Part shown: one piece after another, positions 5,580-52,100 of the stretch | Layout of the letters: each line of letters begins with the position of its first letter | How positions within the stretch are numbered: position 1 is the first letter of the stretch | Assembly: GCF_000315625.1 (NCBI RefSeq) | Contig: NW_005434641.1 | Span: forward strand, 604,918 to 668,917 | Direction of reading: 5' to 3' | DNA: 64,000 nucleotides | Origin: Guillardia theta CCMP2712 | Lineage: Eukaryota; Protista; Cryptophyta | Position numbers and translations under genes: made by a program | Notes under the pieces: model-generated | What the model was told of the DNA's origin: nothing | The model's input: only the letters and a program-made list of their open reading frames with translations | The model's database searches: none

Positions 5580-6160
5580 TGCCCCTCGAGCGGCGGCGGC
5601 AAGAAGCCGCGGCCCGCCTCAGGTATTTTATTGAAATTTCCTAGTTTAAATTCAACTTTTCACTGCAAATGTTCTCGATATAAATAAGTTTGATATTGGG
5701 CCTTCCCGGTGCGTGCGCGGCGGCCCACGAGTCACAGTGCGGCGACGCCGCCCGGCGGGCCGGGCGGGGCGGGCGGGGCGGCCCGGCCCGGTTTTTGTCA
5801 CTGAAGTCAAAATTTACGGCCCGATCCGCCGTGACCCCAGGCTGACCCACCCACCGGCCCGGCCCGGCCGGGCCGTGACGATCCGATCGGTCAGCCACCG
5901 TGGCACCGGCGCCGGTGCCAAAGTTGAAACTTCAGTATTCACTGAAGCACCGGCGGCCCGGCCCGCCGCGAACTTGAATTTAGGCGTCTGGCAAAAGTTT
6001 CAAACTTTTCAGCGTTGAACCGTCCCGGCCCGGCAAGCCCGCCTGTTGAATCGGACTCCGAATGTGGCACACCGGCGGTGGCTCCTTTAACTTAACTCAA
6101 GTAACTTTGCCGAGTAACACTGACTGGTACTGATTTTTAACTTAACTTTGAGTAAAGAAG
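5580..6160. promoter_or_regulatory. GC-rich palindromic intergenic block ending in the conserved ACTCAAAGTTAAGTTAAA core (minus strand, 6136-6153)
   Basis: CCGG/GGCC/GAGTCAC-rich; perfect 20-bp palindrome at 5901-5920; lies in a divergent intergenic region. Confidence 0.5.
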
Positions 6161-6379
6161 GCTAGCCGCGCAGTAGGAACCCATCGCCATGTCCTTTGGG
6201 CGCAGGAAACGGCGTCGGGTAACCATTTCGTTCGTATTTATATAGTCTAGAGACAATTTCAAAATTGAATGCAATCAAATCAAAAGTTCAAAGTGAACTT
6301 GAAGTTCCCTTCTAGGCTTGCCGCCGACCCCGAACTGTATTCCTGAGATTCTGATTTATAAAGTGTAGTAAAGAAGCAT

Positions 6380-8170
6380 TGCGGGGGTGCATTTGACCAG
6401 GGCAAAGGGGGTGGTACAAGTCTGTTCTGTAGATATGTTTTAGAGAGTCGCAGGCGGAACAGTTTCTGTAGCCCTGGAAGAAGTTCTAGGGCCGTCAAGG
6501 GGGTGGGGGTCCTCCAAAGTCTCAAGGTTGCTGGTAGGGGCATCCGAGTCTTGCGATAGTAAAGAGGGTACCTGATATTCATTATGACTTTACTTAAGGA
6601 AAGTGAGAGGAAGGACATTGTATGTGGGATGGGGTTGAACCGACTTCAAGGGTTCTAGATTCATGGGTAGGGGTAGTCTCTCGACCTCACTCCGACGGTG
6701 GATTTTCAAGCCATGCCAGGACGCGCGTGCTCAACGTTGGGGTAGGGGGGCACTTAGTGTTGGAGGGTAGTCAATAGTGTCGGAAAACACGGGTTCTTTC
6801 TGCTGTTAAAAGACCGGTATCGAACCATTTTTGTAGGTAGGGGTAGTATTGTGGGTGGGTAGCCACACGTGCAGGGCACGTCAACACGTGACCCCCGAAC
6901 CGAAACGTGACTCGTGCGACACCCCCGTAATAAAAAAGATTTTTAGAACACCCAGTAAATCACAGGACCGGTGGGGTACTCGAAACAAGTAAAATGGACA
7001 GAAAACTGGCAGGGAAATTAGGGGTGGGGGTGGTAACAGAAGGGGTAGTGGGAAGGCGCCCCAGTTACAAGCAGAGGAGATTTGTTTTTTGGGCTCAAAA
7101 AGACAGACAGGAACACTGAGGGCCATGGGGGGTGGGGTGATGAGAGCCAAGCAGGGACAAAGGTTGTACATGAGAGCGTTTTAGGGGTGGGGGGTGATAA
7201 GGTCCAATGAATTTAGCTATAGATGGAAGGTAAGTCCTTATCGTCTAATACTAGACTTAAATAAAAGATGTTTATCAAATAGAAGGGAGATGGAGAGAAG
7301 CAGATTGCGGGGGTAGGGGTGGGATAATTCGTAGATTGACATGATTATTATTTCATTACCATGGGGTGGGTAGTGAGTGTGTGATTTTATTGGATGTTTG
7401 GGAGATTTTGAGATCTTGAGCGAAGGGGTTTTAGGGGGTGGGGGTGATCATGGTCACGAGACGAAAAATACAAGGTAGGGTGGCGAACGGTGGGGGTGAA
7501 GAAATGAGAATGCTGGTCCTGTCGCTCTCAAAGGGGTGGGGTACATACTTTGAAGGCAAGGCAGGGGTCTTTTTCGCCATAAGTCTTTCTATAACGTGAA
7601 CAGTTCTTCATTTTTCTTTCTTACATAACAAGAATTTGTACGATAGACATCATTGACTGTATTCTGTTAGTACTAGAATAAAAATAATAGTATATCGTTC
7701 TCCTTTATGTCCGCGAATGGGTTCTGAGCGAGTCAACAGAGGGTAGTCCATGTAGATTTGTAAAGCAGGGTGGGTAGACCTGTTGAAACACGGGTTACCC
7801 AGACCCCTACCCATGCAGTGAAGGGAAAGTCGGAGGTGGGGTAGGGTAATCTTGAAGCTCGAAGGGGGTTGGTTCTGTTTGAGCCACGAATGATGCCAGA
7901 AGTCCGAAGACTGGACGGAGGGGGGGTGGGTGGGTCAAGACTACCCCTACTCACAAATAGATTTCCGGTAGTTTATGGGCCACCGACAGGGGGTACTGAC
8001 TGAGGGGTGGGTACTTTAGGAAAGGTTCATGGGAAGAAAAGAAGGTCACTGGTGGCGTCCATGGGGTGGGGGTGAGGAGGGGGTGGGGTGGTATGAAAGG
8101 GACAGAGGGGGGTGGAGCTTACACGGGGGGGCAATAAGAACGGGGGCGGGAGGGTACACGAGGAACTGCC
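6380..8170 (+). promoter_or_regulatory. GGGGT(G/A)GGGGT-rich intergenic block with AT-rich patches
   Basis: Many GGGGTGGGG/GGGTAGGG runs; no credible coding frame. Confidence 0.45.
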
Positions 8171-8511
8171 AGGAGGCTGCGACACACGGCAGGCTACAAC
8201 TGAGGACAGGAGGAACGAAAGGGCGAGAGAGGAAGAGCACTGACGAGGAGAAGGAGAAGCAGAGAGACAGCAGGAACACGCCCAGATCCTTCAACACAGC
8301 TGCGAGAGAGTTGCCTTTGATCGGAGCTGAAGCGAGGCAGGAACAGCTGTAAGAGTACTTTCAGCACAACCCAGCGCAGAGGGAGTATTGTTCGGTGTGA
8401 GGACAGGAAGAGAGCGAGTCTTCTTCGTCTGCTACACTTGCTGGCACAGCAGAAGCTCGTTTCCTTCGGATTCTGTTTCCTGCCCCAGCATTTCTGTGTA
8501 TATTCACCAAA

Positions 8512-9366
8512 ATGTGCCAAAAAGTCGAAACCAGATGCGACGAGGGTTCGCCGTTGGTCACCCTCAGGAAGATCTTGAGCCAGCGGACTCCGCTGAATGC
8601 ATCCGAAGCTACATGGATCCTCAGGCCTCTCCTGATCGCGGTCGCTGAGCTGCATGAGAGGAAGGAGGTACACGGCAAGATTGATTTGGACAGCATTGCG
8701 ATCGAGTTCTTGCATGACCGCTCAGGGCACCTTCACTTAACTCAGCCGGACCATCAGCCATCAGCGAGATGCTCCTCTAACGTCGTACCTCCCGAAGTCG
8801 CAGGAGGAGGAGACTGGACGGCAGCAGGCGACATCTGGCGAGTAGGGTGCATTGCCCTTCACTTGGTGCTCGGGCATGATTACGACCTCGCTGGGGTTGG
8901 GTCTCAACTTCCGATGCTTCCTACCGGCGTTTCCTTTGACTTTGTGGACTTTCTCATGGACTGCATGAGCCCGGATCCCGAGGAGAGGCTGTCTGCAGAG
9001 GAGCTCCTTGAGCACGCTTACCTCATGGACGAGGTGGACGAACTGATTGATTCCATCGACAATGCCCTCCTCCTCTCTTCTGAGGGCAAGCAGGAGGAGG
9101 GAGCGTGCAGGCCGCAGATTGTTCCTGCTCTTCCCTCCAGGGGTCACTTGCTGTTCTCCATGCCTTCCCACACAGCGAGATGTCGAAGGTGCACCTGCCA
9201 TACCGAAGAGTGTGGGGAGGACAAGGCGGCTGCTGACTGCGACTGCGAGTCAGACAGCAGTGATCTCTCACCCAAGTCTGCAGCTCCAACCAAGAGGAGG
9301 CACTTCGAAGGGATGGGCATGCCCGACCTGGCGGCCAAACGCCCTCGCAGCTGCCTGTGTGCGTGA
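8512..9366 (+). CDS. Intronless protein-kinase-like C-lobe, probable pseudokinase
   Basis: LLIAVAELHERKEVHGKID (catalytic loop region), PPEV (APE), GDIWRVGCI (subdomain IX), DFLMDCMSPDPEERLSAEELLEHAYL (XI). No Gly loop, VAIK, HRD or DFG seen. Confidence 0.75.
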   Translation: MCQKVETRCDEGSPLVTLRKILSQRTPLNASEATWILRPLLIAVAELHERKEVHGKIDLDSIAIEFLHDRSGHLHLTQPDHQPSARCSSNVVPPEVAGGGDWTAAGDIWRVGCIALHLVLGHDYDLAGVGSQLPMLPTGVSFDFVDFLMDCMSPDPEERLSAEELLEHAYLMDEVDELIDSIDNALLLSSEGKQEEGACRPQIVPALPSRGHLLFSMPSHTARCRRCTCHTEECGEDKAAADCDCESDSSDLSPKSAAPTKRRHFEGMGMPDLAAKRPRSCLCA

Positions 9367-9529
9367 AGGGCAACTATGCTTTGCCTGATTTTGTTTTTTT
9401 TCCATGTTCATTTCAATATTGTAGAGATATGATGTGTGCTATGTAATATTACGTCACTTTGGCTGTCAATAAAGTGATGACTTCGTATCAAAAACTTTGA
9501 CTTGAGTGCGGAAAAAACAACAGGCACTC

Positions 9530-11711
9530 ACAGGATCTCTTCACATGTGGTTGGTTGGGATGATGGGGAAACTTCGGCTCGAGTCTGAGATGGTCCAGGA
9601 CGTCGGGAGCAGAGGTGACTTTGCCCCGTCTTCAGGAGACATTCCTCTCTCCCCCCCCTTCCTCCTTATGCTCCTCTGCAAGCACATATGAGACGTCACC
9701 AGCCTCGCTCTGCCCCTCTCCTCCTCCACCTTTCTCGTCTTTTGCTCGAATCCTCTCGCTTGCTTCGGATCAGCCGCCAGTTCACCACGCACGCCCTCGT
9801 CCTCCTCGACGCGGTTGCGCACAGTCTTAGTAGTCCCCAAGAACACTGGCGGCACGTCAGACTGAGAGCACATCCTCGCAAGCACAGCAGGCGCACTCAT
9901 GCTCATGTCCTGCACGCGGATGGCTCTCTGTCCTGGCATGTCAGACGCGAGCAGAGGGAGCAGAAGCTGTGCCTGAGGTGTCTTGGAGCGAGAGAAGACA
10001 GCTGGAGTCCTGCCGGTCGGGCCGAAGACGCTGGGAAGTTTGTACTGTCCTGCGTGCAGCAGTTGAGCGGCGGCAGGAGGTGCCGGGCAGTTACCGATGG
10101 GGATCATGCTGGAGTCGGAGTAGAGAGTGCCCGAGGTGAATCTGCATTACGTGAAGGTGACGAGGAGAGGAGAGGAGAACAACGAGGGGCAGAAGGAGGA
10201 GGAAGAGCACAGAAAGAGTAACAAAGGGCACAGCAGGTGGGCAGGAGAGGAAGGAGGAGAAATCAGGGGCAGGGAGGAGCAAGGAGGAGAAGGGGAGGAA
10301 GGCGGAAGGGAATGACAGAGAAGGACCTGCACTGCGGGTCGAAGTTCGAGTTCGAGTGGAGGCCGAGGCGTTGCCTCCTGCTGCCTGCAAACGCCGGCTT
10401 CTCGTCAAGCAGCACGCGGGAGACGTATCCTGACGTCCATCCGGCCCTCCGAGAGACCTCGGCCGCGAGTCTTCTTGGCTGTAGCTGCTCCGTCGGTTTG
10501 TGGACCTGCGAGGACTTGGGCTTGTTCTTCCACCAGCAGCTCGCGGTGGACAGGGTGCTCTAGAGCAGAGTCACGAGCTACCAGGACAGCAAGCAGGAGC
10601 TCGTACGTAGAGTCTGGTGGTTGAGAACCGTTCCCCGTGCAGCTGCTCCAGCAGGGTGTCGTCGAGCGTCGCATGCGAGGAGGCGGCGTCTTCATGCTCC
10701 TGTCGCTGACGGCCTCGCTGAGCTTCCTCCTGCTTCAGGAAGGCAAACGTCTCCCTCTCCATCCTCGGCAGCGCCCCTGAGCTCTGCTCCTCGGGTGATG
10801 GCAGCGAGCAGATGAAGTCTAAGGGGACAGTCAGACGGTCGCCACCAACACTCCGACCTTCCTTCATCCGGTGAGTCCAGCAGGAGGTGCTGCAAGGAAA
10901 CTTCCTGCAGCTCTTGGCCTCTCTCTAGAGATTCTTGGGAGAAAGATGAAAATCTGGGCATGCGCACCTCCATCTCCCTCCTCCCTTCTTGTTCCAGCAT
11001 CTAAGACAGGCAGGAGATGGCGATCAAACCAGTCTCTTCATGTCTCTCTTCATGTCCCTGTTCATGTCCCTGTTCATGTCTCTCTTCATGTCTCTCTTCA
11101 TGTCTCTCTTCATGTCTCTCTTCATGTCTCTCTTCATGTCCCTGTTCATGTCTTCTTTCTTCCCCTTGGCTCCCCGCTGCTGTCATGTTGCACCTTGTGG
11201 CCCCACGACATTCCAGCAGCGTCAAGGAGGGAGAGCAGGTTTTACCTTGTTCGATCGCATGTTCACCTCATTCATGCTCAAAAAACGTTCACGTCATTGA
11301 TGGATGAGATTCAGCTCCTAGCAAGCACCGTGTTGGTCATCTCAGCTCTCCCCCTGCTGAACAGAGCGTCACTAACTTCACCTCGTTGTCACGGCATCTT
11401 CTCAGATTCACTGTGATCCTAACTTGATGACTAATCAAGTTGTTATGCTACTGCTGAAAAGAGTCTCACAGTCTCTCTAATTGCTGCATGCTAGGCTGAC
11501 CCTCCCGCTATCACCCCGCTGCGCCATGCAGCGGTCTGCCTGGCTGTAGCTGCGGCCCCCGGGTTAGGGGCCCGACTCGGACCAACGTAGGGTGCAGTGC
11601 TACCGCCGCGAGACGGAGAGGCGGCCCCCCGTACGGTAGCACTCACTGACTCTCAGCAGCTCTCAGTCTTCGCGCTCGCCCTTCATCGCCCTCGGTCGCC
11701 ATCATCGCCAT
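9530..11711 (-). CDS. Multi-exon hypothetical protein
   Basis: Candidate start MAMMATEGDEGRARRLRAAES followed by a gtgagt donor; further open segments between GT-AG introns; no recognisable domain; boundaries approximate. Confidence 0.4.
11034..11152. repeat. 12-bp tandem repeat (TCTTCATGTCTC / TGTTCATGTCCC variants)
   Basis: About 10 copies read directly; HEER/HEQG in one minus-strand frame. Confidence 0.9.
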
Positions 11712-12353: not shown

Positions 12354-15309
<2,956 letters not shown>

Positions 15310-18970: not shown

Positions 18971-19049
18971 CTCCTTTCCTGACAAACATTGTGAGCTATC
19001 GTCGGGTCCCGCCATCCTGTCTGCTCGCAGATCTGATCTCAGTGGAGCC

Positions 19050-21460
19050 CCTCTCATCGACTCGTTGCTCAGAATCAGACCCTCCCTTCCTAATCTCTTC
19101 ACTTACAAAGAACCATCCCCAGGGGTCGTTCAGACCTTCACACCCGTGCTACTTGCATGACGTCAACTCCGCTGACTGGCTTCCTGCACCATGTACTCTC
19201 GATTGCAGCCCCCCCCTCATCTTTCCTGGGCCTCAACCCTCATGGTCCTCCGATGCACATTCCGGCCTCCGGTCTCCCAGCTTCCGTCGGTTCACACATT
19301 CCAAACCGTGAGTGCTGCCTCGAGTCACCACGGGCCGGCCGGTGCGGCCTGGAACATACAAAAAGGTGGGGTGGGGGTACGGACAAAATCTCTATTTCCA
19401 GAGGAGTAGGGTGGTAGTTGTTTGCTTATGGGTCCTAGGAGTGAGAAAACTTGCCCCTACCCTTTGCAGGTATTCTACTTACCCCACCCTACCTACTCAA
19501 AATACATTTCAAATGACCCCCTACCCACTGCGAATACTACAATACGGACCCTACCTCCAACGGTGAACCCTTCAAAATCCCTCAGTACCGCTCAGGAGAT
19601 CTCGTGAGCATAGATCACAATGTTTCAAGGGAGATTTGTACCGGAGTTATCACTATAATGAAATCTCAAGCGAGATTGGGTATCCCGTCGGAATTCAGTG
19701 GGTCGTATATCGAACCATTGTAGAATTGAAACTTTTCAAGGTACATTCAATTAGCGAAAAGGATCAAGTTTGAGAACATCTAAAATCGAGATCTGTCAGC
19801 ATCGATCTCGCAAAGGTTCAGATTTATTTCCGTCGAATGGCCGCACCCACATGCTATCAAAAGTTCGTATTCCGCCCCTTTTGATCAGTTTTCTCAAGGA
19901 TTTGACGAACTTTGTGAGGGTTGTAGATAAATTGTTCACGAAAAGTACGGTATAATATCGCCAACCAGGGTTGTCCATAGCTGATCGCCCGACCAACCCA
20001 CTCGGCCACCTCGTGAAATCCCTTTCAAAGTAACAAAACCCCACCCCTACCCCCATGTGAATCTCGAAGTCTACCCGTAACTTTCCCAGGACCCCCCTCA
20101 ACATTGCTACCCAAACAAACCGTATCTTGGTTTCCTTGACCCCACCCCTACAGGGAACATTACGACCAAAAAACAAAGGTCGCTTCCTCTGCACGAACGG
20201 GTACTGACATGGTAAAGTGATGGGGTACAATAGGTCGGGTGGTGGGGTCGCAGCAGGAGTCATAAGTGGGACATACAAGGATGTGGGGGCGACAAATCTC
20301 AACTAAAATACTTTTCTTATTCTTAAATATACTTTTAGAATCAAAAGGATTTAATAGATTTTTTTAAAAAAAAAGATATAGTTGGTTTAAAACTATACAA
20401 TGGGCTTCAAAACGTTCTAGCAATAAATGTAGTACCAAGTATATATTAGTTTTAGTTCTGAGAATAAGATTCGAAACGTTCCTTTTTCGGCTCTCTAAAA
20501 CAGTTGTTAGGTCGCGAGACTCAAGGCTGTCGCCAGACCCGCGTGACCACCCACCCTTCAGTCATCCTTGACCCCCACCCCCCTCTCCGACAGCTTTCTA
20601 CACCTGCTGTATGGACAGACACCCGTTCTTTTGTCAATTCAGATTAGAGCACCCCTACCATTTCTCATCCACCCGTACGACTTACAAACTCCATGAAAGC
20701 CTACCCACCCCTACAGCCAGAGGAACATGTTCAACCCACAGCGGTTCTATCTGCCTTCTGCCGAATTCGTTCCTTGTGACCCCTATCATCTGGTGACTTG
20801 ATGTGTTTGGGGAATGTTCCCTCCATACCGCCTCTCTTGTCACTTCACAACTTTGTCCCCACCCCTACCTGATCCCCTGAAATTCCTACCCCCTTTTTCT
20901 GAAATCTGCCCCCTTTTCACCCCTGGTGAGTCACCCCCACCCCTTAGTTTCTAAATACATCATCGGCTACCCGTCAATCTATTTCCAACTTGTCAGGCAC
21001 CCCCGTTTCTTGGCTGGTCCCCAATTGCCTTTCGACGGGGTGGTTTTGTGAAGGTGGGGTGATCTCCAATATCACCAAATTGGCTCCTATACCCCGTCAA
21101 ATGCTCTGAATTGGTACAAATATATCAGTCACTTTTCTCATGAAATCAATAAATAGTAATGGAATCTGAGGGCGCATTCAGAGTTGTGTAAAATATTTCA
21201 AATTTGTACCTAAAGTTTTGTAGTTTACTCAATAAAGAGTAAATTTAGTACTGTACAATCAATGGGTCATGGTGGGTCTTTTCTGTGGGTCATGCAGCAG
21301 ATTGAAATGCAATAATGGGGTATATTTTTAAGAGAGCCGACAAGATTTTTGAGAGTGGGGGGGGGGAGGGGGGGTGGTTGACGAAGGGTAAGGGTACAGG
21401 GTGGGAAAGATGCAAAAGATGGCAATGGAAAGCGAGACATTGGAGTGGGGGAAGACGTGG
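19050..21460. promoter_or_regulatory. ACCCC/CCTACCC-rich intergenic block (G-rich on minus strand) with AT-rich cores
   Basis: Between divergent Kelch and MYB genes; same vocabulary as 6380-8170, mostly on the opposite strand. Confidence 0.45.
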
Positions 21461-29331: not shown

Positions 29332-29531
29332 AGCAGGTACAGTGGAGGGTCTTCAATGTTTCATCAGCTAGAGCAGGTACAGTGGAGGGTCTTCAATGTT
29401 TCATCAGCTAGAGCAGGTACAGTGGAGGGTCTTCAATGTTTCATCAGCTAGAGCAGGTACAGTGGAGGGTCTTCAATGTTTCATCAGCTAGAGCAGGTAC
29501 AGTGGAGGGTCTTCAATGTTTCATCAGCTAG
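29332..29531. repeat. Perfect 40-bp minisatellite, 5 copies (AGCAGGTACAGTGGAGGGTCTTCAATGTTTCATCAGCTAG)
   Basis: Head-to-tail identical copies without spacers. Confidence 0.97.
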
Positions 29532-30541: not shown

Positions 30542-33500
30542 TCAATGACCTCTGGACTGATTCCCCATGTACTTGCCGCTGAAGTTGTAGCTGTAAGATT
30601 GAGAGCTGGGGAGGAAGCATTGCTCACCGAGTCTCGGAGCACTTGAACATCTCCCATCCTCCGACGCTGTCGCCCTTGTAGTGGAGCTCCCTGTCACCGA
30701 GATCAGCAAGACGAGAGCGGAAGATGCTGGGTTACCAGTCGTGAAACTCCTTGAGCTCGATCTTGTGCGAGATCGAGAAGATCCCCAGATTCATCTGAGT
30801 GCAGCGATCGTAGATCTCCTGCTCGACATCTGCTGGGGAGGTGAGCTGCTGGAGGTGGAAAGGACACGTGCCTGGAGATATTCCGTTGGTGCATTCGTCG
30901 AGGACGACGAAGGAGGGCCGATGGTAGAACAACCTTGCGAAAGCTGTAGGAGAGCAAAGACGTGAGGGATTAGAGGTGAGGGACACCCAGACAAGGAAGA
31001 GATCTAGTGGAGGAGGAGGAGGAGGAGGAGGAGGAGGAGGAGGAGGAGGAGGAGTNNNNNNNNNNNNNNNNNNNNNNNNNNNNNNNNNNNNNNNNNNNNN
31101 NNNNNNNNNNNNNNNNNNNNNNNNNNNNNNNNNNNNNNNNNNNNNNNNNNNNNNNNNNNNNNNNNNNNNNNNNNNNNNNNNNNNNNNNNNNNNNNNNNNN
31201 NNNNNNNNNNTCCCAAAGCAATGAAGCTGTCATGGCGCACCAGTACAATCAGAAAGTCCCGGCAGCGTTTGCCTTGCTGCTCCACCCCATCCCACCTGAA
31301 TCGACGTCGACATGGCCTCCATGTTTTTCCATGTGCTTGAGAAGTACTGAAAGGTGACAGTCAAGCGCGCAAAGGAAGGAGAGTCAGGGCAAGAGGAGAC
31401 CAGCAACAGGAAAGAGTGGGAGGGGAAGAGTGGGAGGGGGGAGGAGAAAGAAGGAGGGGAGGAGAGGGGGGAGGGGGGAAGAGTGGGAGAAAGGGGGCGA
31501 GAGGGGCAAGGAGTTGGGGATGGGGGCAGGGCGAAACGTTCAACTGCTTGCCTGTGCTATCATGTCTGGCGTATACTTGTCGATTCCATTCAGACCTAGT
31601 CTCACCTGTTGCATCAAGATGCGTAAAAGACTCTCAAGCTGCCCTCCCCTGCCTTGCTCACCGGTCTGCTGACCAGAAACAAACCGATGACAGTGACGAA
31701 GTATTTGTTGAGGTACTGCCGGTGAGAGTTTAGAGGGGAGTTGAGGGGATGACGGTGTAAGTTGTTTTCTGTGATAGCAGCATCTGAGTTTGCTCTGACC
31801 TGCCGCAAGATCTCCGAGTTGAAGTTCATCGCAGTTGTTTTCGAAAGATGTCTCAACACTCGAGCAAACCTGTTGGGTGCTCTCAGACCTCCGTCATCGC
31901 TTCCCCTCCTCCCTCACGATTCGTTGAGCCTGTCCTTCTCGGGTACTTCTCCTCCCAGAAACGCAACCTGCCGTTGTGCTTAGGATCGAGCCGAGACTTG
32001 AAGCCAACCTGCTCGCAATTTGTGATGAGCTCGCTATGGACGCCTCTGAGGTTGAAATCAGATTGAAATCAGATTGAAATCAGATTGAAATCAGATTGAA
32101 ATCAGATTGAAATCAGATTGAAATCAGAGTAGAATGGAATGAAAGTCGTCGCACGGACCGGAACATTCCCTCCAGTCTCTGCTCTTGTGCTGCGAGCTCG
32201 CCGTAGGGAGGCTGCCAAGTCTTGAGTTGCCTCGTCGCTGGTGGCCAAGTGAAACTCACGAGAGAGACGGTGGAGATGCAGGAGGCGATGGCGAACCAGC
32301 CGTAGAGGGTGAGAGGAGTGGTTAGTCCCTGAACTCGACTGGCAGGAGAGCTCATGAGTCGCTACCAAAAGGAAGACACAAGGAAGAGGAGGGGGAGGAG
32401 GAGAGGGGGAGGGAGTGAAAGAGGTCAAGAAAGAGAGGAGAGGTGGAGGGGAATAGAATTGACCTCAAGTCAACACTGTAGACGATGAAGTCGACAATCG
32501 GCTTGAGAGATTGCGACAACACCTGAAACCGGATGTGAGTTGGGTTATGGTGTGAAACAAGCATGCGCATCCGTATCAGTAATGGTATGAGTATCAGAGA
32601 GGGTCAAAAATTGAAAGATCAGCAAGGAAAAACCTGAGAAAACATCTCTGAGAACTTGTCGACGTCTGATGTAATCTAGTATTGCAGCAGTGTCATAGAA
32701 TCATCTGAAAGTAGCGCCGATCTTACCTGATGGTCGCAATGCTCAATCTTATCATCTCCAACCTTGTTTGCTTTGTAGAAGATCATATCATTCTGCATCA
32801 TCGTCATCGTCATCCTCATTATCATCATCTCATCGAATATCTTTCACTGTCCTGTCCCTCACCTTCCTCATGTACTTGTCGTGACACCATAAAGTAATTT
32901 TCTCGCGCACCTGACAGCAGAGATGACTAGAAGTCAACAGAACAAGACCTCAAAACCTCCTCACGCAGCTTGGCGATGTAATATTTCAACAGAGCGTTCA
33001 AGATCTGTTCGCATGAGCTCAAAACCAAAACAAGACACCAGCAAGGTCACCGATAGGAAGACAGATGTTCCCGCAAACTGAACGACCAAACGCTGATGTC
33101 GCGTCAGACTCAGCGCGGATTCATGTCATTGTGAGACACCTGCATATCTCGAAAGTTCCTCGTGACCTGTCACATCGTTCAGCATCTTCTCGCTCTCATC
33201 CTCCTTCTCTCACCAGCATTTTGACCATCTTTCCCCAGTGCCGAGCGACCCAGACCTGATGCGGTTCAACTCAGCAGAAAGACAGAACATGACATGCGCG
33301 AGACTCACGGATCCCATAGTTCGCAAAAGAAGACTGGTGCAGAGCATAATCACTGGTAGAGGTTACAAAGATGTCTGACATGACGCTGGCTGCTACCTGT
33401 CCCGACCTCCCGCTTGCTGCAGGCCTGCCATTCTCACTCAACATGTCTCAGGCCTTGTAAACATGTTCGACCTTCTTGAAGATCCTCATCAACGTGCGAT

Positions 33501-38469: not shown

Positions 38470-40400
38470 CTAGCCATCCAAATCTCCGTGGGCTCTTGGG
38501 GTAGAGATGGCGGACATGGCGGAAGCAGGAGTCGAGGCGTCGCTTCTTAGGACAAATTTGGATGACCAGGCCTGCTCAAGGCCCTGGCTAGAGCTGACTG
38601 TAGTGGAGGTGGATTTGGCATCCGAGGAGCAGGGGCTGCGGCTAGAGGTCAGAGATGAGGAGGGTAGAACCTGATGGTACCTGTCCACTCGGCGAGGTGT
38701 GATGCCTTCACTGATAGACTCCTCCGTATCTTCGTCTATCACCGACGCAGTTTCTTCCGTGATTTCCTGCCACGGGGTTAGAAAGCAAGCAAACGTCCTT
38801 AGGAAACCTCCACCTGGCTTATGTCAAACTTGTAATAGGGATCCAGACAGGGCGAAGGTGAAAGGAAGGTAAAGGATCGCAGGCTTGACGGGATGAACAG
38901 GTCTTCCTCCACTTCATACTTAGAGGAAGGGCTCGGAGTCTCGCGTCTCGCTTCTCTCCTCTTGACTCTGGTTCCGGTTGAGGACTACTTTGTGACAACA
39001 AGCATTCACTTACCTCTGAACCCTGACTTCTTCTCCTGAAGCAAGGGTATGGCTCTGAACGTATTCGTTCGGGCCTGACATCTCACATCCCACTGTGAGG
39101 TGGATCGTTGTTCCAGCTTTCCCTTTAGTCAATGCAAGCAGCTTTTCACTTGGCTGCGTTGTTGTTGTTAGAGCTCCCTGAAAAACAGCCGTTTGCATAC
39201 CAGATTGCGAACCGGCGTATCTGATATGGCGTACAAAATATCTCCAGCCAAGATTGCTCGAGAGTTGTCGGCAGGACCTGTCGCACTCGATCAAAACAAG
39301 CTTTTCAACAGAATCATGTCACTGCACCTCCTTCAATAATCCTGGAGATGACCAGATAACCATCTTTCCGGTTCTTGAACTCAATCCCAAGCCAGCCTTC
39401 GTCTTTTCCATTTTCTGCTTCCTCGAGGTTGGCTGGTCTCCAGTTTGGCAAGTATTGTCGAGTTCTGCAGAGACGTCACACTTCAAGGAAATTCAGCACA
39501 GAATGGGCGTACAAATCTTTGCTCCAAAGCATCAGATGTCTTTGATTCGTGTCAACGTTCGCTTTCGATTCAGGTTGCTGCACATTCCCGATAGGTGTCT
39601 CTGGAGATGTTGACGGACAGGAGGCAGGGGTTGCTGGAGGGTAGGAGGCACGAGATGCAGGAGAGTAGGAGGCGGAGAATGATTCCTGTAAGTTTCGAGA
39701 AGAGGGATGGTCGACAGCAGCAACGATTTCAGAGGCATCGCTTCTGCTCGATCTTGGTGCTTGAGGGACGTCAATTGGCCACACGTCTACATAGTCAACA
39801 GCGTCGTCCTCATTGCCGACATTCTCCTTTTGCTTGTGAAATTCCTCGACTGTAATAGTTGAATGGTGCGCAGTACGCTTGCTCCTCTTGTGGTGAGTGT
39901 GGCAGTCGATGCAGAAGAAGCTCTCGCAGTCCAAACAGTAATGCTCCGCCGGGTCTTGGTCTGCACACTCGTTGCACAACATGTTGCTGGAAGCAGATAC
40001 GACCATCACAAGATCTGCCAGACTATCTTGAATTCGATTGTTGTCTCGATCAAGACTGTTTCGTTGGGCCAACACGCCTGTATTAAAATACTTCAGCTTC
40101 CATATATCAGTGTTGGATATAGTGAGAAGGCGGCAAGGCCTAAGACTCGTTCACTGTGGGGTTATCTAAGCTTGTCCTATACTGCAAGTGCAGCTCTATT
40201 GAGCAATCAAACGATTGAAGGAAGGCGCAGAAAACCTGGGGGTATGTACTACAACTACAAGATCTGGTTATCAAGAAGCTTGAATGCAACACACGTCAAG
40301 GAGGTCAAAGGATGTCATCACAGACCAGAAGAGCCAAATTCACAACAGAAAGGCGGGGACAGCATCAGCCAAACAACAAAATTGACGAAAAAGAAGAAGA
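38470..40400 (-). CDS. B-box zinc finger plus PDZ domain protein; 5' end uncertain
   Basis: CNECADQDPAEHYCLDCESFFCIDCHTHHKRSKRTAHH (B-box); WLGIEFKNRKDGYLVISRIIEGG|PADNSRAILAGDILYAISDTPVRNL|PSEKLLALTKGKAGTTIHLTV (PDZ). Confidence 0.8.
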
Positions 40401-40809
40401 CGCTGGGGTAGCGCAATGGAATCTGAAGGAGAAAGGGGGTACTGAGAGGAGTCAGGCAGCACGTGCTGAGAGAAGAAGGGGAAGGGGAGCAACTCACTGT
40501 TGAGAGAGGGGGGAGGGAGAGGGAGAGAGGGAGAGAGGGAGAGGGAGACGGAGAGGGAGAGGGAGAGANNNNNNNNNNNNNNNNNNNNNNNNNNNNNNNN
40601 NNNNNNNNNNNNNNNNNNNNNNNNNNNNNNNNNNNNNNNNNNNNNNNNNNNNNNNNNNNNNNNNNNNNGGAAGAGATGGAGGAGATGGAGGAGATAGAGG
40701 AGATAGAGGAGATAGAGGAGGAGCATGTCACTGCTGAGAGAAGGCTGGCGGACATTACAACGGCCCAAGCGTCTCTGCCATGCTCAGAGCGGCAGGTCGC
40801 GAGAGGATT

Positions 40810-42590
40810 AAATCAGGGTACTCTCCCAACCCCCAGGTTTGACTGAACCAGTACCCACCGTATTGACCTAGATCCTTATTATTTCGATTTGGAAGGGGTG
40901 GATAGACAGCATGGGGTGGACAGACAGTACTTGAAATCGGGTGGGTGGGTGGGTGGGTGGGTGGCCGTGGGTGGGTTGGAGACCCTATAAGGGGTACTTG
41001 AGTGGGAATCGTGAGGGGTACTTCGGTGACATAAACGAGGCATAGCGTGTTCTGGCTATCCCAAGAGTCGTCGAGGAGGAAATGGGGGGTGGGGTAAGTG
41101 AGGGCTGCATGGAGAACCGGTCATTGTCCTGACTGCAAAGGGGGTAGGGAAGTGACCACTGATGAGTGGAGACGGCGCAGGTTTGGATCAAGGAGGCTTT
41201 GATTGACTGAGGGGTACTCCATATGATGGGGTAGGGGTCATGCGTATATTGTCTGGGGTACCGGGTAGGTGTGGGGTACGAAATCTTCAGCCTGGCGTCT
41301 CCATCTGAAGAAATGTACCTCGCAAGGACCGGTCTCTTCTACGTCCTAGAACCCTTTGAATTTCAGAGGGGTAGAGGGTACTACCTAGGACCCTGCACGG
41401 TCTCCGAGCGGTTGGCCCATAGATACGGTACCACTTTCGGGTTGAAGCCTCGGAGGGCGCTTGGGGGGGGGGGGGGTCCGGGGGGTCACTGGTAGGGTGG
41501 TGACTGGGCCGCCCTCCGCCGTTACTAGGCTTTGCCAGTTGAGTAAACCGTGCCTGGTACAGAGTGGTGCATCCGATCGGATCGGGGCCGCTAAATCTTT
41601 ACTCAAAGTTAAGTTAAACACTACTGAGTAGGCCCCGGGCCTAATACCGTGCCGGCCGCCGCGCCGCCTTGCCGGCGGGCCTCTGCCAGGAGTGGCGCAA
41701 CTTGTGACTTAGGCAAATGGTGCCGCGCGGCTTTGCGCAAGTTGGCCCTGCGTCAAGTCAGCAACTTCCGGCGGGCGGGGCGACTCGGCCGAAAGTTTCC
41801 GAATCGAGTCGACGTCGCCGGCCGCCCGGCCGCGCGCCCTCCGAGTCACTGAACGGTCGAGTACTGCGGTCCGGCCGCCCCCGCGGCGGCCTCTTCCGAG
41901 CGCCGTTACACTTCCGTAGTTCAGACTCAGCCACTGTCGGCGGCAGGCTACTGTCTGTACGTTTACCGTTCAACTTGGCAACGGTTGAAAACGGTTGTAG
42001 TGAAATCAGTCACTGTGATAGTACTGTATCATGATCGCCGCCCGGAACTGTCGACGGTGAGATTTGTACGCCAGGAAACTTAATACTGACAGTAGCGTAC
42101 CGGACACACCTACTGAGTCCGCCGCGGATACGGTCATAAAGCGGCGGCCTTCACTCAGTGAAGTTAACACAGTGTAATCGGACCGTACGGCGGGGGCAGT
42201 CACTCGGAGGAGTCCGGCTCGGAACTTGTCACCGAATGCCGGGCGAACCCCGAGGCTCGACGCCGGCACTCTGCGGCGCGGCCCGGCCACTCCGAGGCTC
42301 ACTGCCCTGGCGGCCACCGTGACCCGGAGTGACGGTGGCAGCGGCGGCGGTCCGGCCGCGGCGCGTCTGCCGGGCCGGGCCCGTGATGAGTCACTGACTT
42401 TGAGTAAAGGCCGGAGTACGGTACCGTACTACACTGACAGGCTGAGCCTCGGAGGCCGCGGCGAGTCAGTGACAGTGACCGCCGGGGTGTCCCGGGCCTG
42501 ACCCGGGCACTGCGGCAGTACTACGGTACACTTGAGTAAACACCGTGACATCGCCTTTTCCAGTGACCGTGAGTCAGCCGGAACTTGAAA
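40810..42590 (+). promoter_or_regulatory. Bipartite intergenic module: GGGGT block (40810-41500), ACTCAAAGTTAAGTTAAA core (41601-41618), GC-palindromic block (to 42590)
   Basis: Same vocabulary and order as 5580-8170 (inverted) and 50890-52100. Confidence 0.55.
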
Positions 42591-42601
42591 CAGAGCAAAA
42601 G

Positions 42602-44041
42602 ATGCGCCTACAGGATATGCGGTAATGCAACAAACATGCGAACGACGCGAATGGTCGAGGGACTTGGGGAGGATGAATGGTGTGCGAGTAGATGCAGAAT
42701 CAGAGTTGTGAATCTCGCTAGAACATGGAGCAAGTAGTGGAGAAAGGCACAGCACAATGGAGATTTAGAGCATCGAGGTTTGGATACAATTTGGGCCATA
42801 GCTCGAACGATTCAAACTCAGAATGCAACGGGAGGGAGGCAGGGAGGCAGGGAGCGAGGGAGGGAGAGAGGGAGGGAAACTGGAGTATATTTGATGCACT
42901 TCCATGTTCGTTGACCGGTCGCATACATCATGGTTGTAACTTTGCTTTGTCCTTAAGTTGTGTATTTTATCTGCTCCTCACCTCTGCCTTGTGGAATGCA
43001 TGGAGCGTGCATTGCACAGTCACGGGAGATATTCGAGTCAACCCTCAACTAAGAACTACCGCCAAGAAAGATGATTTCGGTCTCGTTGCATGCTCATGTT
43101 CAAAGGTTGTCTCACTATTGGTGGTGCAGCATTGTGCAAGCTCAAAAAAGCTGGGATGCACTTTGAAGTCATCTGCCATCCAGGCATGATTCTCAAGGTA
43201 TCTCGTTAGCCTGCCAGCTGCTGTTGATGCGCTGAGACCTGCTGTTGATGCTCTTAGTTCCGAGAAGGACTTGTCTCAGACGTCATGGACGTGGTTGTGT
43301 CCAGTGACATCTTTAAGGTGTCCACTGGGGCGGGAGGAACCTAACGAGATTCTAAGATTTCCTGTCAGGACGCGAAGACAAGGATGCATCGAAGTCATGT
43401 GGACATCGTGAGTGCCTTCGGGAAGGAGTAGGAGACTCCGTTCCTCACCCTCTTGGAGTGACATGACGGCTGCAGGGACATTACATCTTGTATCAAAGAG
43501 ATCTTGATGGAAGGAGAGTATCAGGTTGCAAGGAGGGAGGAAAGGAGAGCCGGAGACTAATCGTCTGACAGCACACTGCTGAGGAGAGGAAGCGACAGAT
43601 GGAGGAGAAGATGGAGGAAGTTGCCGCCTTCATCTGCCAGTGAGAAGCGTCCCTCTGCAGTCAACCTGCTCTGATTGTCTTCACCCTCTCTTCCTTCTTC
43701 CTCTCCTTTCAGAAACTTTGTCGAAACTCCATCGCATCGTGCGTACAGCATGGAAGAGATGATGGTAATTTGTTCTTGATCTGTTCCTCTCGCCCTCCCC
43801 CTCCACGCTCATGCGTCTTTTACAGGAGATTTTAGAGAGTCATCCTAACTTGAAGTTCAACCCGATGAGGTTTGCAGCGGCACGTCCAACTTGGTTTGAC
43901 AAGCTGCAGGTCAACCGAGTATCAAGCGATGGAAGTTGTGAAGCAGCTGCAGGAGGACGTTCCTATCGTCCCCTCCTACAAGTCCGTCGCATGCACAGAG
44001 AAATTCAAAGATTTTTGTCACGCGTATGTAGAGGATTGTAA
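42602..44041 (+). CDS. Multi-exon hypothetical protein
   Basis: Short exons with GT-AG introns (ETPSHRAYSMEEMM|EILESHPNLKFNPMRFAAARPTWFDKLQ). Confidence 0.4.
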
Positions 44042-47930: not shown

Positions 47931-49546
47931 CAACCGTATCAAACTTTCTTGCCAGGGTTGCCGTTTCCCCGAACGACAAAGGCAGAAGGAAAGGAAGAGC
48001 TGAGAAAACTCATGACGTTCTTGCTCAATAACATGCCGGCCGCTTGTTCTCTTGAAGGATGAATGATCAGCTTGAGCAGAACCTGATATTGATATGATCT
48101 GAGTCACGACACCAAAAAAAAAAAAAAATTGAAAGCTGCATTGTTCTTCAGTTAGGATTGCAGTAAGTTGGCAAGTGCGTTGAGTTTAAATAGCTCCTGT
48201 CTTCCTCTGCACCCGCTCCTTTATTACGACTAGAGCTTGGTGATTAGTCTATCCATCCTCATTCATTTAACAAATCCTTCAAGAAAACAACTGACGCCAT
48301 CGCAGTTCAGTTACTGCTGCGAAAAGTTCTTAGGCCGGAGAGTGCTGGAGGTACCAGAGGGTAGAATGCATTTTCTTCCCAGTGATCTGCCAGACAAATA
48401 AGTCACGACAAGTTTCTCCATGCTGACTCCATGGCGTAATCAGTCTTGATTCGCTCATTTTACAGATTTCAACATGCAAGTTTGAATTTCTTCTCAGTTT
48501 TCCATCATGTGAAACACAACAAGCCATGGTACACAGGCGCACAACACAGTTCACAATTCAAGGCAGATGTTCTGCAATGTGGGACGAAAGAATCAAGAGG
48601 ACGTGAGGTAAAAGAGCAGCGTGAGGATGAAGGATGATGGAGGTCGATAGCGATGGTTGACTGACCGGGTCAGGGACCCCCGACAGGAGGACGACAGGCT
48701 TCGGTGCAGCAGCAACAGAGGGCTTGAGAGAGAACATGGCGGTAAAGCTAGGGCAGGCGGTGATTCAGACAAGCACAAAGCTAGGGGTGGGTAGTTGAAG
48801 AAGACTGGATTTGGTACTGAGTAGAGCACACAATGTCTGAATTGTTTTTAAGCGATTTCCCGAATTTATTTCCCGCCATGCTTAGTTATGCACGCATATT
48901 TCAATTATATTTTGAAAATTAATCTATAGTAACGAAATATTAAACATGAGTTTACAAATTTAATAACAAATTTCATAATCTTATCACCCCACAGCAATAC
49001 ATTCATCTTTAATCTTTTGCGAAGGGTCATCTACTTCCGTTGGATGGGTAGGTGGTAACTTGAAGAGGGATTGGTAACTTGAAGAGACAACCAACAAGGA
49101 TAGCCTGATCCCGCCGCGGGTGATCGTACCGGGCCGGGCCGCTCCGCCGGCTTGCGGGCCGCCGCGGCTCCGACTGGCGGCCGGGCGGCGTGACTGCCAG
49201 TCGCGGGCCGTCCTCCGCAAGGTTGGACTCGCCGATGAACTCGTGAGCAGTACTGGCACAGTCAGGCCGAGTTTCCACAAAGTTTATTGAAGTTACAGGG
49301 TGAAAAAACTTGAACACAAATCAATTTTCGCCGCAGTGTGTTCATCAGCGGCGGAATCTCTCCGAGATCATTTGTGCAGTTCGATCCCGTTTGCCGTTTG
49401 TATCGCAACTAACAGCCCGGTGACGGGCAGGCCAGCTGGACGGTGTCCAGGTGGCCTCGCCACTCAAAACTTTGAAGAAATTCCTGTTTTGGTTCCCACA
49501 AACGAAAGCTCCTGTCCGACCAGACAGCTTACTTGCAGAGTGATGT

Positions 49547-50885
49547 TTACTTCTTCTTCTTTTCGGGCTCGGGCATCTTCATCTCAGTCAAGGCTGGAGG
49601 GCCCTCTTTCAGGTTGGTATACTGCAAACAAATCAGCGGAGGCAATTTGATCGCATCCTACTCCACACACCTGAACATCCGAATTGAGGACGCGTTCCAG
49701 GAATCGCTCCAAGGAGCTCTGAGACAATGCAGTATCATCCTTAGCAAATCGAGTTCTCTTGCCAGTACGAAGAACAGCAACCTAAAAAGAATAATGAATA
49801 GAAGTATGAGATCATCGTATTTTCCAACCTTGGCCCCATCAGTGGCCTCAATGTCCAGAGCTTTTACAAAAGCGCTCTCGCGATCCGAGTTGATCCACAT
49901 GAAGGCGAGTTTCACTTTCTCTCCAGAATGCTTGCTTTTTGTCGCCATCACAATGTCATAAACATTCTTGTCGAGCTTTCCATCTGCAGTTGCTTTGCTT
50001 GACACAATCACACACCAGGCATCGGCTCCGTAGCAAACGTCCTGAGCAGATAGAGAGGTAAGCTCAGGAATAGCCTCTGCAAGCCAAGGTTTCTTGAGAG
50101 CAAGCTCCTCATCAGCTGCATTGTTCTCCAGGGCAAAAGTTTCCTGATATTTGTTCAAGAATTCGAAAATCTCCCTCACTTCAAACTTGTCATCATACTT
50201 GATAGGTTTCTTCTGGCCAGGTTTGACAACAAGGATGGTGGGGAACTTAGAAACTTTGTATCTGCTCACAACTCCCTTCTCGTCCTTGTTCACAATGCCG
50301 AGAGTCATCTTGCCCTTGAGATCCACGCTCAATCCTCTCCACATGAGGGGAGTCTTGGGTTTGTCGGTGAACAAGAGGGCCTTGAACTTGCCAGCCTCCT
50401 TGTTGAGGAATGCATCAATGTTGTCAGCTGTGATCTTTTCAACAAAGTGGGTCATAAACTTCAATGCCCATGTGTACACAGCCTTGTCGTTTCTCTCTCC
50501 TGTGTACTCCGTGACACCAAACCCTCCAGGCGGGATCACTTTCAATGTAGGGAACGAAGTAACTGAATATTCATCGCAAATCTTCTTCTGCTTGCCGCAA
50601 TTGATGGCAGTAACCTTGATAATTCCACGAAGCTGTTTTGCGAGGCTGCAATAGTCCTTAGTGAAAGATTTCGCGTTGGCAGCGTCATCCTTGTAGAACT
50701 CGATGAGCTTGACATGATTCATCGAGTCGGGCTTCTTGATGTGAGTGTGAAAGTTGAGATTGTTCAGCTCCTCAACCAGGCATTCCTTGTCCTTGCCTTC
50801 TCTCCCGTACAGATCGGCAGAAGCCGGCATTGCTGCCGCAAGCAGCGCCGCCGCCAGGAGCAGATGAGTCGATCTCGCAGCCATG
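49547..50885 (-). CDS. Secretory thioredoxin-fold (PDI/PDIA6-like) protein lacking CxxC
   Basis: Signal peptide MAARSTHLLLAAALLAAAMPASA; LIEFYKDDAANAK..LRGIIKVTAINC..CDEYSVTSFPTLKV..YTGER; second domain KALLFTDK..YKVSKFPTILV; ends EPEKKKK*. Confidence 0.85.
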
Positions 50886-50889
50886 ACGC

Positions 50890-52100
50890 CTACCCTACCC
50901 AGACCCACGTGCGTTAAGTGGGGTTCGACAGACCCTTACACCCCTGAATCTACTATGCAAAAGACGGGTGCTCTTTCACTTAAACCCCGGACCCCTTCAG
51001 TTCCCTCGAACAGTTACAAGTGTGGAGGTAGCCCTGCAAGGCTCTCTGATTTATTAAGTGAGCTACTAGTAATAAGGACACATCCTTCAAGATCAGGATT
51101 CACAGCTGAGGCTCCCGACACTCCATCATGGGTGACGTCATAAAATAACGGTGATAACGGTCTTCTCGATCTTCTAGGACTGTGATTTTACCCTCATAAG
51201 TTCACTCAAAGTTAAGTTAAAAATAAGTACGAAGGCCGCCGGGCCTGAGCGACCCGGCCCGGTGAGTCACTGCCCGTGTGACATCCGCCGGACCGCCCCG
51301 GCGCGGCCGCCCGGGTTCAGAGGCCGACCGTCACAGAGTCACCGGTCACGGGGTGACGGTCCAAGCCGACTCCGGCGGCCCGGGTGGCGAGGTCTGATCA
51401 CTGAGAATCAGAAACTAAAAGCTGTGATTGCCGAACTTCGGAACTTCGGACTGAGTGCAATGCGACAATCATGGCAGTTTCTGGACGAGCAGAGAAGCAT
51501 ACTGATATCGAATGTTGCCCGGCCTGATTCGCTCCCAAAGCATAGTCACCAATCAGGTTGCTAAACTTCAGGCGGCAAGCCTCCAAAGTTCCGATTCAAC
51601 TTGGCAATGCACGCCGGTGTAGCGAAGTGGCACAACTTGATGATCAGGGAGGTTTATCAGGATGCCATGGCAAAGGACGGTACTAAACTGAAGAAGGGAA
51701 GATCTTGAACCCTCGGATGATCATCGTAATAGACTCCCGGGGCGGTCCGAGCCGCTCGGCCCGCGTTTCACGGTCACCGGGTGATCGGCCCCCGACTGTC
51801 CGATCCGGGACTCCGACGCCGTGGAGCCTCGGAGTCCAGTGAATGCGGCCCGGTAGCCCGGCCGCCGCGCACTGCACAGTGAGTCCGCTTGTCCGATCTC
51901 ACAGAGACGGTGAGTCACCGGGGCGGCCCGCGGCCAGGCCGGGCGGCCGGCGCGCCGTTCCCGGAAAGTCACCGTGGCGGCGTGACTCACGACGATCGGA
52001 CGGTGCAGGCTGATGAGCCTCCGCCTGACAAACTTGAAACTTGGCAACCGAAGTAATTGCCAAGCCTCGCGGCAGTGATTGTGATTAGTGAGGGTTGGCA
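50890..52100 (+). promoter_or_regulatory. Bipartite intergenic module with core ACTCAAAGTTAAGTTAAA at 51204-51221
   Basis: Short ACCC-rich stretch, then the core, then a CCGG/GAGTCAC-rich block. Confidence 0.55.

Follow-up and report, generated by a model that had tools for sequence, protein, structure and literature searches.

A short, oriented, invariant motif at the junctions between two kinds of intergenic DNA in Guillardia theta

INTRODUCTION

What could hold an 18-bp sequence identical at widely separated intergenic positions of a compact genome, each time at the border between two kinds of noncoding DNA? This question is raised by a stretch of 64,000 nucleotides of Guillardia theta nuclear DNA (scaffold JH992997.1), which we call the window. 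An earlier sequence-only reading had taken the 18-mer for a conserved, oriented cis-element and not for the product of recent duplication, and had named a replication-origin consensus, a boundary or insulator site, and the end of an old nonautonomous mobile element as candidates. Cryptophyte promoters, insulators, and intergenic organization are areas in which almost nothing is known, and our literature search found no description of the motif or of the two-block intergenic architecture in which it lies.

RESULTS

Copies of the motif and their conservation

The 18-mer ACTCAAAGTTAAGTTAAA was recovered by a search of the window at the three places claimed for it, 6136-6153 (minus strand), 41601-41618 (plus), and 51204-51221 (plus); its expected count is 0, with 0 matches across 100 dinucleotide-preserving shuffles. 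No further match was present in the 64-kb window at up to 2 mismatches, nor any additional, decayed copy of the motif at up to 4, a scan in which its distribution is all-or-none. Self-BLAST reproduced the extended identities reported earlier, pairing 6127-6156 with 51201-51230 over 30 nt at 93% (copies 1 and 3, claimed as 26/27) and 6136-6158 with 41596-41618 at 23/23 (copies 1 and 2). These searches establish the motif as a real, nonrandom feature of the window, conserved in an all-or-none manner.

The 31-nt consensus is CTTTACTCAAAGTTAAGTTAAAAATNAGTAC, of which about 27 bp are invariant. Its left half, CTTTACTCAAAGT, contains the bZIP-like word TTACTCA, and its right half reads (AAGTT)2-AAA. 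Copy 1 (6127-6157, minus) has 0 mismatches to the consensus. Copy 2 (41597-41627, plus) is identical to copy 1 over the left 22 nt and differs in its 3' tail (CACTACTGA), while copy 3 (51200-51230, plus) departs from the consensus at 2 positions of its outer left end (GTTC for CTTT) and, from the 18-mer on, agrees with copy 1 at 26/27 nt. The 12-nt partial copy described at 6086-6097 is real and extends to 13 nt with 1 mismatch. It belongs to a degenerate tandem second copy (6086-6117, minus) 50 nt from copy 1, in which the right half, GAGTTAAGTTAAA at 6086-6098, is preceded by a left half split by small insertions (ACTC-ggc-AAAGTTA-cttgagtta-AGTTAAA). Furthermore, our analysis revealed a fourth, inverted copy, an exact left half alone (CTTTACTCAAAGT) at 42397-42409 (minus). 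It stands where the GC block of copy 2 ends, 787 nt away from that copy, and points at the SBDS gene. The sample described here is three full copies and one half copy from one 64-kb window.

None of the assembly gaps (748-1573, 31056-31210, and 40569-40668) touches a motif copy, the nearest being about 930 nt from copy 2. The assembly is sound at 41540-41700, since the DNA runs contain 100% of the words sampled there. The gap at 40569-40668 leaves the 5' end of the gene to the left of copy 2 uncertain.

Two kinds of intergenic blocks meet at the motif

The intergenic DNA around the copies is of two kinds: A blocks, which are G/C-skewed and rich in GGGT/ACCC, and B blocks, which are CpG-island-like and made of short palindromic words. 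The 64 kb contain no more than four sharp A/B junctions, and the motif lies within 50 nt of three of them. When 300 nt on each side were read in the direction of the motif, the preceding flank had a GC content of 0.45 to 0.59, with 1 to 6 CCGG/GGCC/GCGC/CGCG words and 6 to 8 GGGT/ACCC-type words, whereas the following flank had a GC content of 0.60 to 0.70 and a CpG observed/expected ratio of 1.07 to 1.24, with 17 to 30 and 0 to 3 such words, respectively. Over whole blocks, this ratio was 1.1 to 1.25 in B blocks versus 0.62 to 0.80 in genes and 0.63 to 0.68 in A blocks. The flank polarity described earlier, GGGT/ACCC before the motif and GC-rich DNA after it, therefore holds for composition but not for strand, as on the motif strand the preceding block is C-rich at copies 1 and 3 and G-rich at copy 2 only. 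An "upstream G-rich element" is accordingly found on the motif strand at copy 2 alone; relative to the genes, the G-rich strand is sense for copies 1 and 3 and antisense for copy 2.

At copy 1, the B block (5480-6126; GC of about 0.60, CpG observed/expected of 1.16, short palindromic words, and no strand skew) is followed by the motif and then by an A block on the plus strand (6158-8178; rich in GGGGTGGGG/GGGTAGGG, G skew of +0.37, CpG observed/expected of 0.63), which stops exactly at the start of the kinase transcript (8179). At copy 2, the A block (40880-41596; GGGGTAC/GGGT-rich on the plus strand) separates the motif from a minus-strand gene that contains a B-box zinc-finger open reading frame (ORF) (39476-40075), and the B block (41628-42396; GC of 0.65, CpG observed/expected of 1.20) has inverted left halves at both ends. 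A short promoter-side stretch containing GTACGGTACCGTAC words (42410-42601, plus) then separates the half-motif from the SBDS start. At copy 3, the A block (50885-51199, GGGT-rich on the minus strand) fills the interval between the motif and an ATG (50884), and the B block (51231-52100), composed of two GC-rich parts with a more AT-rich center between them, stops where the minus-strand gene upstream, which encodes an MLLE-SLBP protein, has its 3' end (about 52102).

The flanks had been described as impossible to align by eye, and BLAST likewise found no alignment beyond 23 to 46 nt. With gaps allowed, local alignment extended the similarity of copies 2 and 3 into the GC side by about another 60 nt, through a shared stretch that includes an AGGCC...GGCCT palindrome.

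Polarity relative to genes

In all four cases, the 5' side of the motif faces an A block and then the 5' end of a gene, and the 3' side faces a B block, an agreement of orientation that is statistically weak at this sample size (about 1 in 8). The genes are the kinase, whose mRNA start at 8179 is given by JGI transcript contigs (copy 1), the minus-strand B-box ORF (copy 2), SBDS, with a model start at 42602 (half-motif), and a minus-strand thioredoxin/protein disulfide isomerase (PDI)-like gene with its ATG at 50884 (copy 3). The divergent region of copy 2 has one outward-facing motif copy per gene. Because the motif stands anywhere between 193 and about 2,000 nt from the 5' end of the gene, it is not a core promoter element of fixed position. 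In the covered parts of the window, about 9 of the 13 annotated or inferred gene 5' ends have no motif.

The 9-mer TTGAGTAAA, the core of the left half, occurs 6 times against 0.49 expected, and each occurrence is intergenic and lies 5' of a gene. Occurrences outside the motif copies include one at 41539-41547 (plus), which pairs with copy 2 in inverted orientation over a distance of about 50 nt, one at 42532, between the half-motif and the SBDS start, and one at 21224-21232 (minus), within a small palindrome (TTTACTC...TGAGTAAA) in the A block between the divergent Kelch and Myb genes. In addition, B blocks are about 24-fold enriched for TGAGTCA and AACTT-type words, as would be expected of binding-site clusters.

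DISCUSSION

The explanation that we favor, at a probability of roughly 0.4, is that the motif would be under selection as an oriented site for protein binding, with the role of a boundary or distal promoter element. The view that it is a conserved cis-element and not a recent duplication gains support from our results, because 18 to 27 nt are exact beside flanks that cannot be aligned, the copies are all-or-none, and their position at the A/B junction and their polarity are fixed. Neutral decay would not spare 18 to 27 nt in three copies, and their identity counts in favor of purifying selection, which would act on the motif. A long asymmetric motif in consistent orientation at domain borders, the pattern looked for in an oriented boundary, was found at three of the four sharp junctions, with the same polarity in four of four cases. 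Among the candidates first put forward, the boundary or insulator type fits best, as all four copies stand between CpG-island-like and promoter-side blocks; the mobile-element end is its live rival. A sequence-specific protein, or a pair of proteins, would bind the putative site, and the bound site would separate the promoter side of the gene from the GC block upstream. The 3' flank of the upstream gene, or a divergent neighbor, would thereby be kept apart from that promoter side, and the motif would work as an oriented boundary or distal promoter element.

Comparable arrangements are known elsewhere. The vertebrate CTCF motif, of about 20 bp, is an oriented insulator or boundary element, and the yeast Reb1, Abf1, and Rap1 sites lie at the upstream edge of promoters. 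The G. theta motif resembles these sites in being long and nonpalindromic, in its fixed orientation at a domain border upstream of promoters, and in its dispersed, invariant copies with unconserved flanks. However, its sequence is unrelated to theirs, and the likeness is one of functional analogy only; we know of no boundary factor of the CTCF or general-regulatory-factor type described in cryptophytes. A second likeness, in sequence, is to the sites of bZIP proteins (AP-1/GCN4/Yap type), as TTACTCA in the left half is one base from TGACTCA and the adjoining B blocks show the 24-fold enrichment in perfect TGAGTCA. In contrast to bZIP sites, the conserved unit is far longer and includes the tandem AAGTT pentamers.

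Another explanation, which we consider possible but doubtful, is that a nonautonomous element, or an insertion process that builds B blocks, has the motif as its conserved end, made up of a terminal inverted repeat and subterminal sequence, with the B blocks as the bodies. A perfect 13-bp inverted repeat of the left half brackets the B block of copy 2 (41597-42409, 813 bp), but the flanks of this unit (...GCTAAAT | element | GCCGGAG...) contain no direct repeat, hence no target-site duplication, and at copies 1 and 3 the B-block ends away from the motif offer only weak motif-like words. The B block of copy 3 does contain 37-nt arms, 76% complementary and 609 nt apart. Self-inverted alignment scores (18 to 20), however, are modestly above those of shuffles and near those between islands, which indicates weak self-palindromy. 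The degenerate tandem duplicate with small insertions at copy 1 and the likeness of copies 2 and 3 for about 60 nt into the B side also count in its favor, and recent activity would likewise give an all-or-none distribution of copies. On the other hand, apart from the motif and those 60 nt, the B interiors did not align between copies in self-BLAST or local alignments, and elements old enough for this would still need selection or gene conversion to keep an exact core. No transposase was found. With MITE or foldback elements, the B blocks share the 13-bp inverted repeats of one block, a size of 0.65 to 0.85 kb, noncoding content, and richness in internal palindromes; unlike them, they lack target-site duplications, alignable interiors, and decayed termini, and in two of three the second terminus is missing or very weak. 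As for Helitron ends, copies 2 and 3 have a short GC palindrome 9 to 12 nt from the motif, and copy 1 differs; no conserved CTRR at a fixed distance from the motif was seen among the copies, and no Rep/helicase was found among the window ORFs scanned. Unalignable B blocks with weak self-palindromy and no target-site duplications do not support an ordinary transposon family.

It is distinctly improbable that the motif acts at the RNA level. Such a signal might be a region where transcription starts, a short first exon whose splice donor would read TTTGA|GTAAAG in the direction of the gene, or either end of a small or promoter-associated RNA. All four copies have TTTGA followed by GT on the gene-facing strand, and G. 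theta splice donors are loosely conserved. At copy 3, contigs from two RNA-type runs (X1 and X6) cover part of the bin 51161-51311, where depth is far above that of the neighboring SLBP-like gene, and adjacent bins are uncovered; no splice joint connecting the motif with an exon downstream of it was reported there. Of the words sampled from copy 2, a fraction of 0.00 is present in RNA assemblies, while the DNA runs contain all of them, and kinase transcripts begin 2 kb downstream of copy 1 without a leader; these two observations led us to reject an abundant mRNA 5' leader. In a collection of metagenomes and transcriptomes, which may or may not include the G. theta transcriptome, none of 59 exact 18-mer matches stood in a G. 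theta-like context. A structured noncoding RNA of the Rfam families was ruled out, as no covariance model matched at gathering scores across the window (near copy 3, matches were at chance level only) and fold signal was absent (z-scores of -1.5 to 0). The short RNA-run contig overlapping the bin at copy 3 is unexplained, and it counts against the boundary or promoter reading.

Cryptomonad spliced-leader RNA genes also present a short invariant sequence, on either strand and dispersed in the G. theta genome, followed by GT. Their leader is CTCGGCGGCTGGTCAAG, and after the GT come about 23 conserved nucleotides and a U-rich Sm site (Roy 2017, PMC5619915). The motif differs from this leader (PMC5619915), its copies have neither the conserved 23-nt downstream region nor the Sm site, and the sequence after GT is not conserved among them; we therefore rejected it as a spliced leader. 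The true leader CTCGGCGGCTGGTCAAG does occur in the window, where the SLBP-like mRNA carries it as a loose end at 53925.

Finally, a sequence-defined replication origin consensus with a neighboring G-rich, quadruplex-prone element is scarcely credible: the motif is AT-rich and oriented and adjoins blocks rich in G-quadruplex-type runs and CpG-island-like DNA, both of which are associated with origins in animals, but the G-rich strand differs between copies, the gene-facing strand TTTAACTTAACTTTG, read directly, has no match to the ARS consensus WTTTAYRTTTW, which is that of yeast, and only some budding yeasts are known to have origins defined by sequence.

A broader version of the boundary reading, which we regard as unlikely, is that a long, oriented boundary element, defined by its sequence and read by a dedicated factor, partitions the compact intergenic DNA of G. 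theta into a CpG-island-like module and a G-quadruplex-prone promoter module. Such an element would be a CTCF-like or general-regulatory-factor-like insulator of independent cryptophyte origin; in an alternative form of this proposal, the motif would mark replication origins that are defined by sequence. Should the motif instead prove to be where an island-building element terminates, the way in which the GC palindrome islands of the G. theta genome arise would be explained. A 27-bp element that is invariant, oriented, and placed at a sharp change of composition is a concrete experimental handle, which may serve for finding the factor that reads it, for setting promoter limits in the design of G. 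theta transgenes, and for testing how a compact, partly trans-spliced genome separates neighboring transcription units.

Motif copies and their conservation

The 18-mer ACTCAAAGTTAAGTTAAA has three exact matches in the window, at 6136-6153 (minus), 41601-41618 (plus) and 51204-51221 (plus), where the sequence-only reading had placed them, and none in 100 dinucleotide-preserving shuffles. Self-BLAST and the sequences themselves also bore out the longer identities reported for these sites, with 23/23 nt between copies 1 and 2 and 26/27 nt between copies 1 and 3. Together they define an oriented motif of about 27 bp (copy 1, about 6127-6157, minus; copy 2, about 41597-41627, plus; copy 3, about 51200-51230, plus), whose 31-nt consensus, CTTTACTCAAAGTTAAGTTAAAAATNAGTAC, has zero, five and two mismatches in copies 1, 2 and 3, respectively. 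Furthermore, no additional match to the 18-mer was found in the window with up to 4 mismatches, so there are perfect copies and no decayed ones. In a k-mer survey of the window, no other word of 18 nt or more was repeated outside low-complexity sequence.

The motif comprises a 13-mer left half and a right half of tandem AAGTT type. The partial copy noticed at 6086-6097 proved to belong to a further motif copy in tandem with copy 1, of which it is the right half; the left half of that copy is interrupted by small insertions. The left half alone, CTTTACTCAAAGT, recurs as an exact inverted copy at 42397-42409 (minus), 787 nt from copy 2, and its core, TTGAGTAAA, occurs six times in the window against 0.49 expected, always in an intergenic position 5' of a gene. 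None of the motif copies is touched by the assembly gaps (748-1573, 31056-31210 and 40569-40668), and the words sampled around copy 2 were all present in DNA runs. A lake-water metagenome run (2024) contains 56% of the sampled 31-mers of the G. theta intergenic interval 41540-41700, which indicates near-identical G. theta DNA in that sample.

Other repeats in the window include perfect tandem arrays with 100% identical units at 29332-29531 (40-nt unit, 5.0 copies) and 32052-32128 (11-nt unit TTGAAATCAGA, 7.0 copies). A perfect telomere-like array of the TTTAGGG type (plant/alveolate-type), with 8.6 units, lies at 63470-63529, with the end of scaffold JH992997.1 some 7 kb away.

Compositional junctions

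Two kinds of intergenic DNA meet at the motif. B blocks are CpG-island-like, GC-rich (GC 0.60-0.76) and made up of short palindromic words, with CpG observed/expected ratios of 1.09-1.25 and no strand skew, and are enriched in the words AACTTGA, GAAACTT, GTACCGT, TGAGTCA, GTCACTG and CGGGCCG. A blocks are GGGT/ACCC-rich, with CpG observed/expected ratios of 0.63-0.68, a G/C skew of up to 0.37 and enrichment in GGGTGGG, GGTAGGG and GGGGTAC; the ratio in genes is 0.62-0.80. A sliding 300/300-nt contrast detected just four sharp A/B junctions in the window, near 6150, 41600, 51200 and 54950, and three of them carry the motif. At the fourth, near 54950, there is a different, AT-rich element, GAAAGTTTACTAAACTTGAAAAATAAAAAAATTAATAATAAAGG (55020-55075, minus), which is loosely motif-like, having the words TTTACT, AAACTT and AAAAAT in common with the motif and the opposite orientation.

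A small CpG-rich island at 49040-49310, bordered on one side by two copies of GGTAACTTGAAGAG and on the other by AAAGTTTATTGAAGTTAC, occupies the DNA between the PDI-like gene and its plus-strand neighbour, which meet tail to tail; thus, B-type islands are not confined to places where a promoter would be expected.

Gene context and polarity

Gene context was established from gene look-ups, spliced contigs of RNA-type runs and JGI transcript contigs. The tubulin-tyrosine-ligase-like ORF of the window (96% identity to a Guillardia theta protein) and the thioredoxin/PDI-like protein (100% identity to GUITHDRAFT_94570) are encoded by genes that map to scaffold JH992997.1 of GCA_000315625.1, where the record coordinate is the window coordinate plus 604917.

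Copy 3 lies between two minus-strand genes, whose introns all appear as CT..AC in the plus-strand sequence. The MLLE-SLBP gene, upstream, ends near 52102 and is followed by the GC-rich B block (51231-52100), the motif and about 320 nt of GGGT-rich DNA before the ATG of the PDI-like gene at 50884. At copy 1, a plus-strand gene with its stop at 4043 precedes the B block (about 5480-6126) and the motif, beyond which 2 kb of GGGGTGGGG/GGGTAGGG-rich DNA lead to kinase transcripts, all five isoforms of which start at 8179. This kinase gene (plus strand, 8179-11378, several short introns; five JGI isoforms, L071-L075) is represented in the NCBI model merely by an 83-aa fragment (window 8791-9039), and a search with the kinase protein by word index yielded no paralogue from G. 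theta that has a genomic record.

Copy 2 sits within a region of divergent genes. Its 5' side is separated by 700 nt of GGGGTAC-rich DNA from a minus-strand ORF at 39476-40075, whose weak match to a B-box zinc finger (E = 5e-5) does not reach the Pfam cutoff; the NCBI annotation examined nearby ends at window position 39547 and does not cover 39476-40075. On its 3' side, a GC block terminates at the inverted half-motif, which is 193 nt from the start of SBDS (42602), so that each gene of this region has one outward-facing copy.

In all four instances, the 5' side of the motif (ACTCAAAG...) faces the skewed A block and then the 5' end of a gene, and the 3' side faces the B block. The distance from motif to gene spans a tenfold range among these four instances from one 64-kb window, and most genes of the window have no motif.

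Transposon, RNA-level and origin explanations

The flanks had been judged unalignable by eye, and alignment agreed: the motif copies share no long flanks, apart from about 60 nt of B block in copies 2 and 3 that include an AGGCC...GGCCT palindrome. An ordinary transposon family is not supported, as the B blocks cannot be aligned with one another outside the motif, self-inversion is weak and no target-site duplication was found beside the one unit with perfect inverted termini, the B block of copy 2. Long-range foldback of the B blocks was discarded; their self-inverted local alignments score modestly above shuffles and about the same as cross-island alignments. The main rival explanation is that the motif is the conserved terminus of an island-building element. 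The inverted termini at copy 2 speak for this possibility and the otherwise unalignable islands against it; we consider it unlikely.

An RNA-level signal is less probable still. At copy 3, the bin 51161-51311 is partly covered by a short contig seen in two RNA-type runs (bin depths of 19.5 and 204.9), with zero depth in the bins on either side in the same runs. Copy 2 is not evidently transcribed, and none of its sampled words occurred in the RNA assemblies that contain the neighbouring exons. Small structured RNAs were dismissed after Rfam (gathering and E-value thresholds), a tRNA search and folding yielded nothing. A spliced leader was suspected since the motif is followed by GT whichever strand is read, and was rejected because the published cryptomonad leader, CTCGGCGGCTGGTCAAG, differs (PMC5619915). 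The 3' part of that leader (GGCTGGTCA) is the reverse complement of a loose end, TGACCAGCC, just past 53925 on an RNA-run contig of the SLBP-like mRNA (window 53895-53960), which indicates that transcripts of the minus-strand MLLE-SLBP gene receive the leader by trans-splicing at an AG acceptor there.

A replication origin, proposed together with a G-rich element upstream of the motif, is very improbable; the G-rich strand of the A block is opposite to the motif in copies 1 and 3 and the motif's own in copy 2, so the upstream element is not strand-specific.

Relatives elsewhere

Metagenome and viral scans returned the exact 18-mer at 59 loci and at one locus, respectively. They all lie in AT-rich DNA (mostly 23-48% GC) of unrelated context, do not extend to the consensus, and were therefore set aside as chance matches or unrelated repeats. 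At least 13 AT-rich metagenome contigs of one project series, Ga01573xx (L003, L007, L008, L013, L014, L023, L024, L028, L034, L042, L051, L053 and L059), share the repeat ...TTACAACTTAAG-18mer-AGAAGAA..., an unrelated repeat family of another organism. Freshwater cryptophyte contigs with a PDI homologue (73% amino-acid identity) lack the A/B architecture as well as the motif, and this organism is too distant for the absence of the motif to be informative. The PDI protein of Hanusia phi shares at least 90% identity with that of G. theta. The literature searched does not mention the motif sequence or the two-block architecture.

Interpretation

Three perfect copies of 18 to 27 nt, with unalignable flanks and no decayed copies, would require either purifying selection or a continuing process that converts or copies that segment alone. 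The same is suggested by the exact placement at a compositional switch with a fixed polarity toward the 5' end of a gene, and by the divergent pair, whose two genes have one outward-facing copy apiece. Considering the four motif instances of this 64-kb window, the best fit is that the motif acts in G. theta as an oriented protein-binding boundary or distal promoter element, a tentative reading to which we assign a probability of roughly 0.4.
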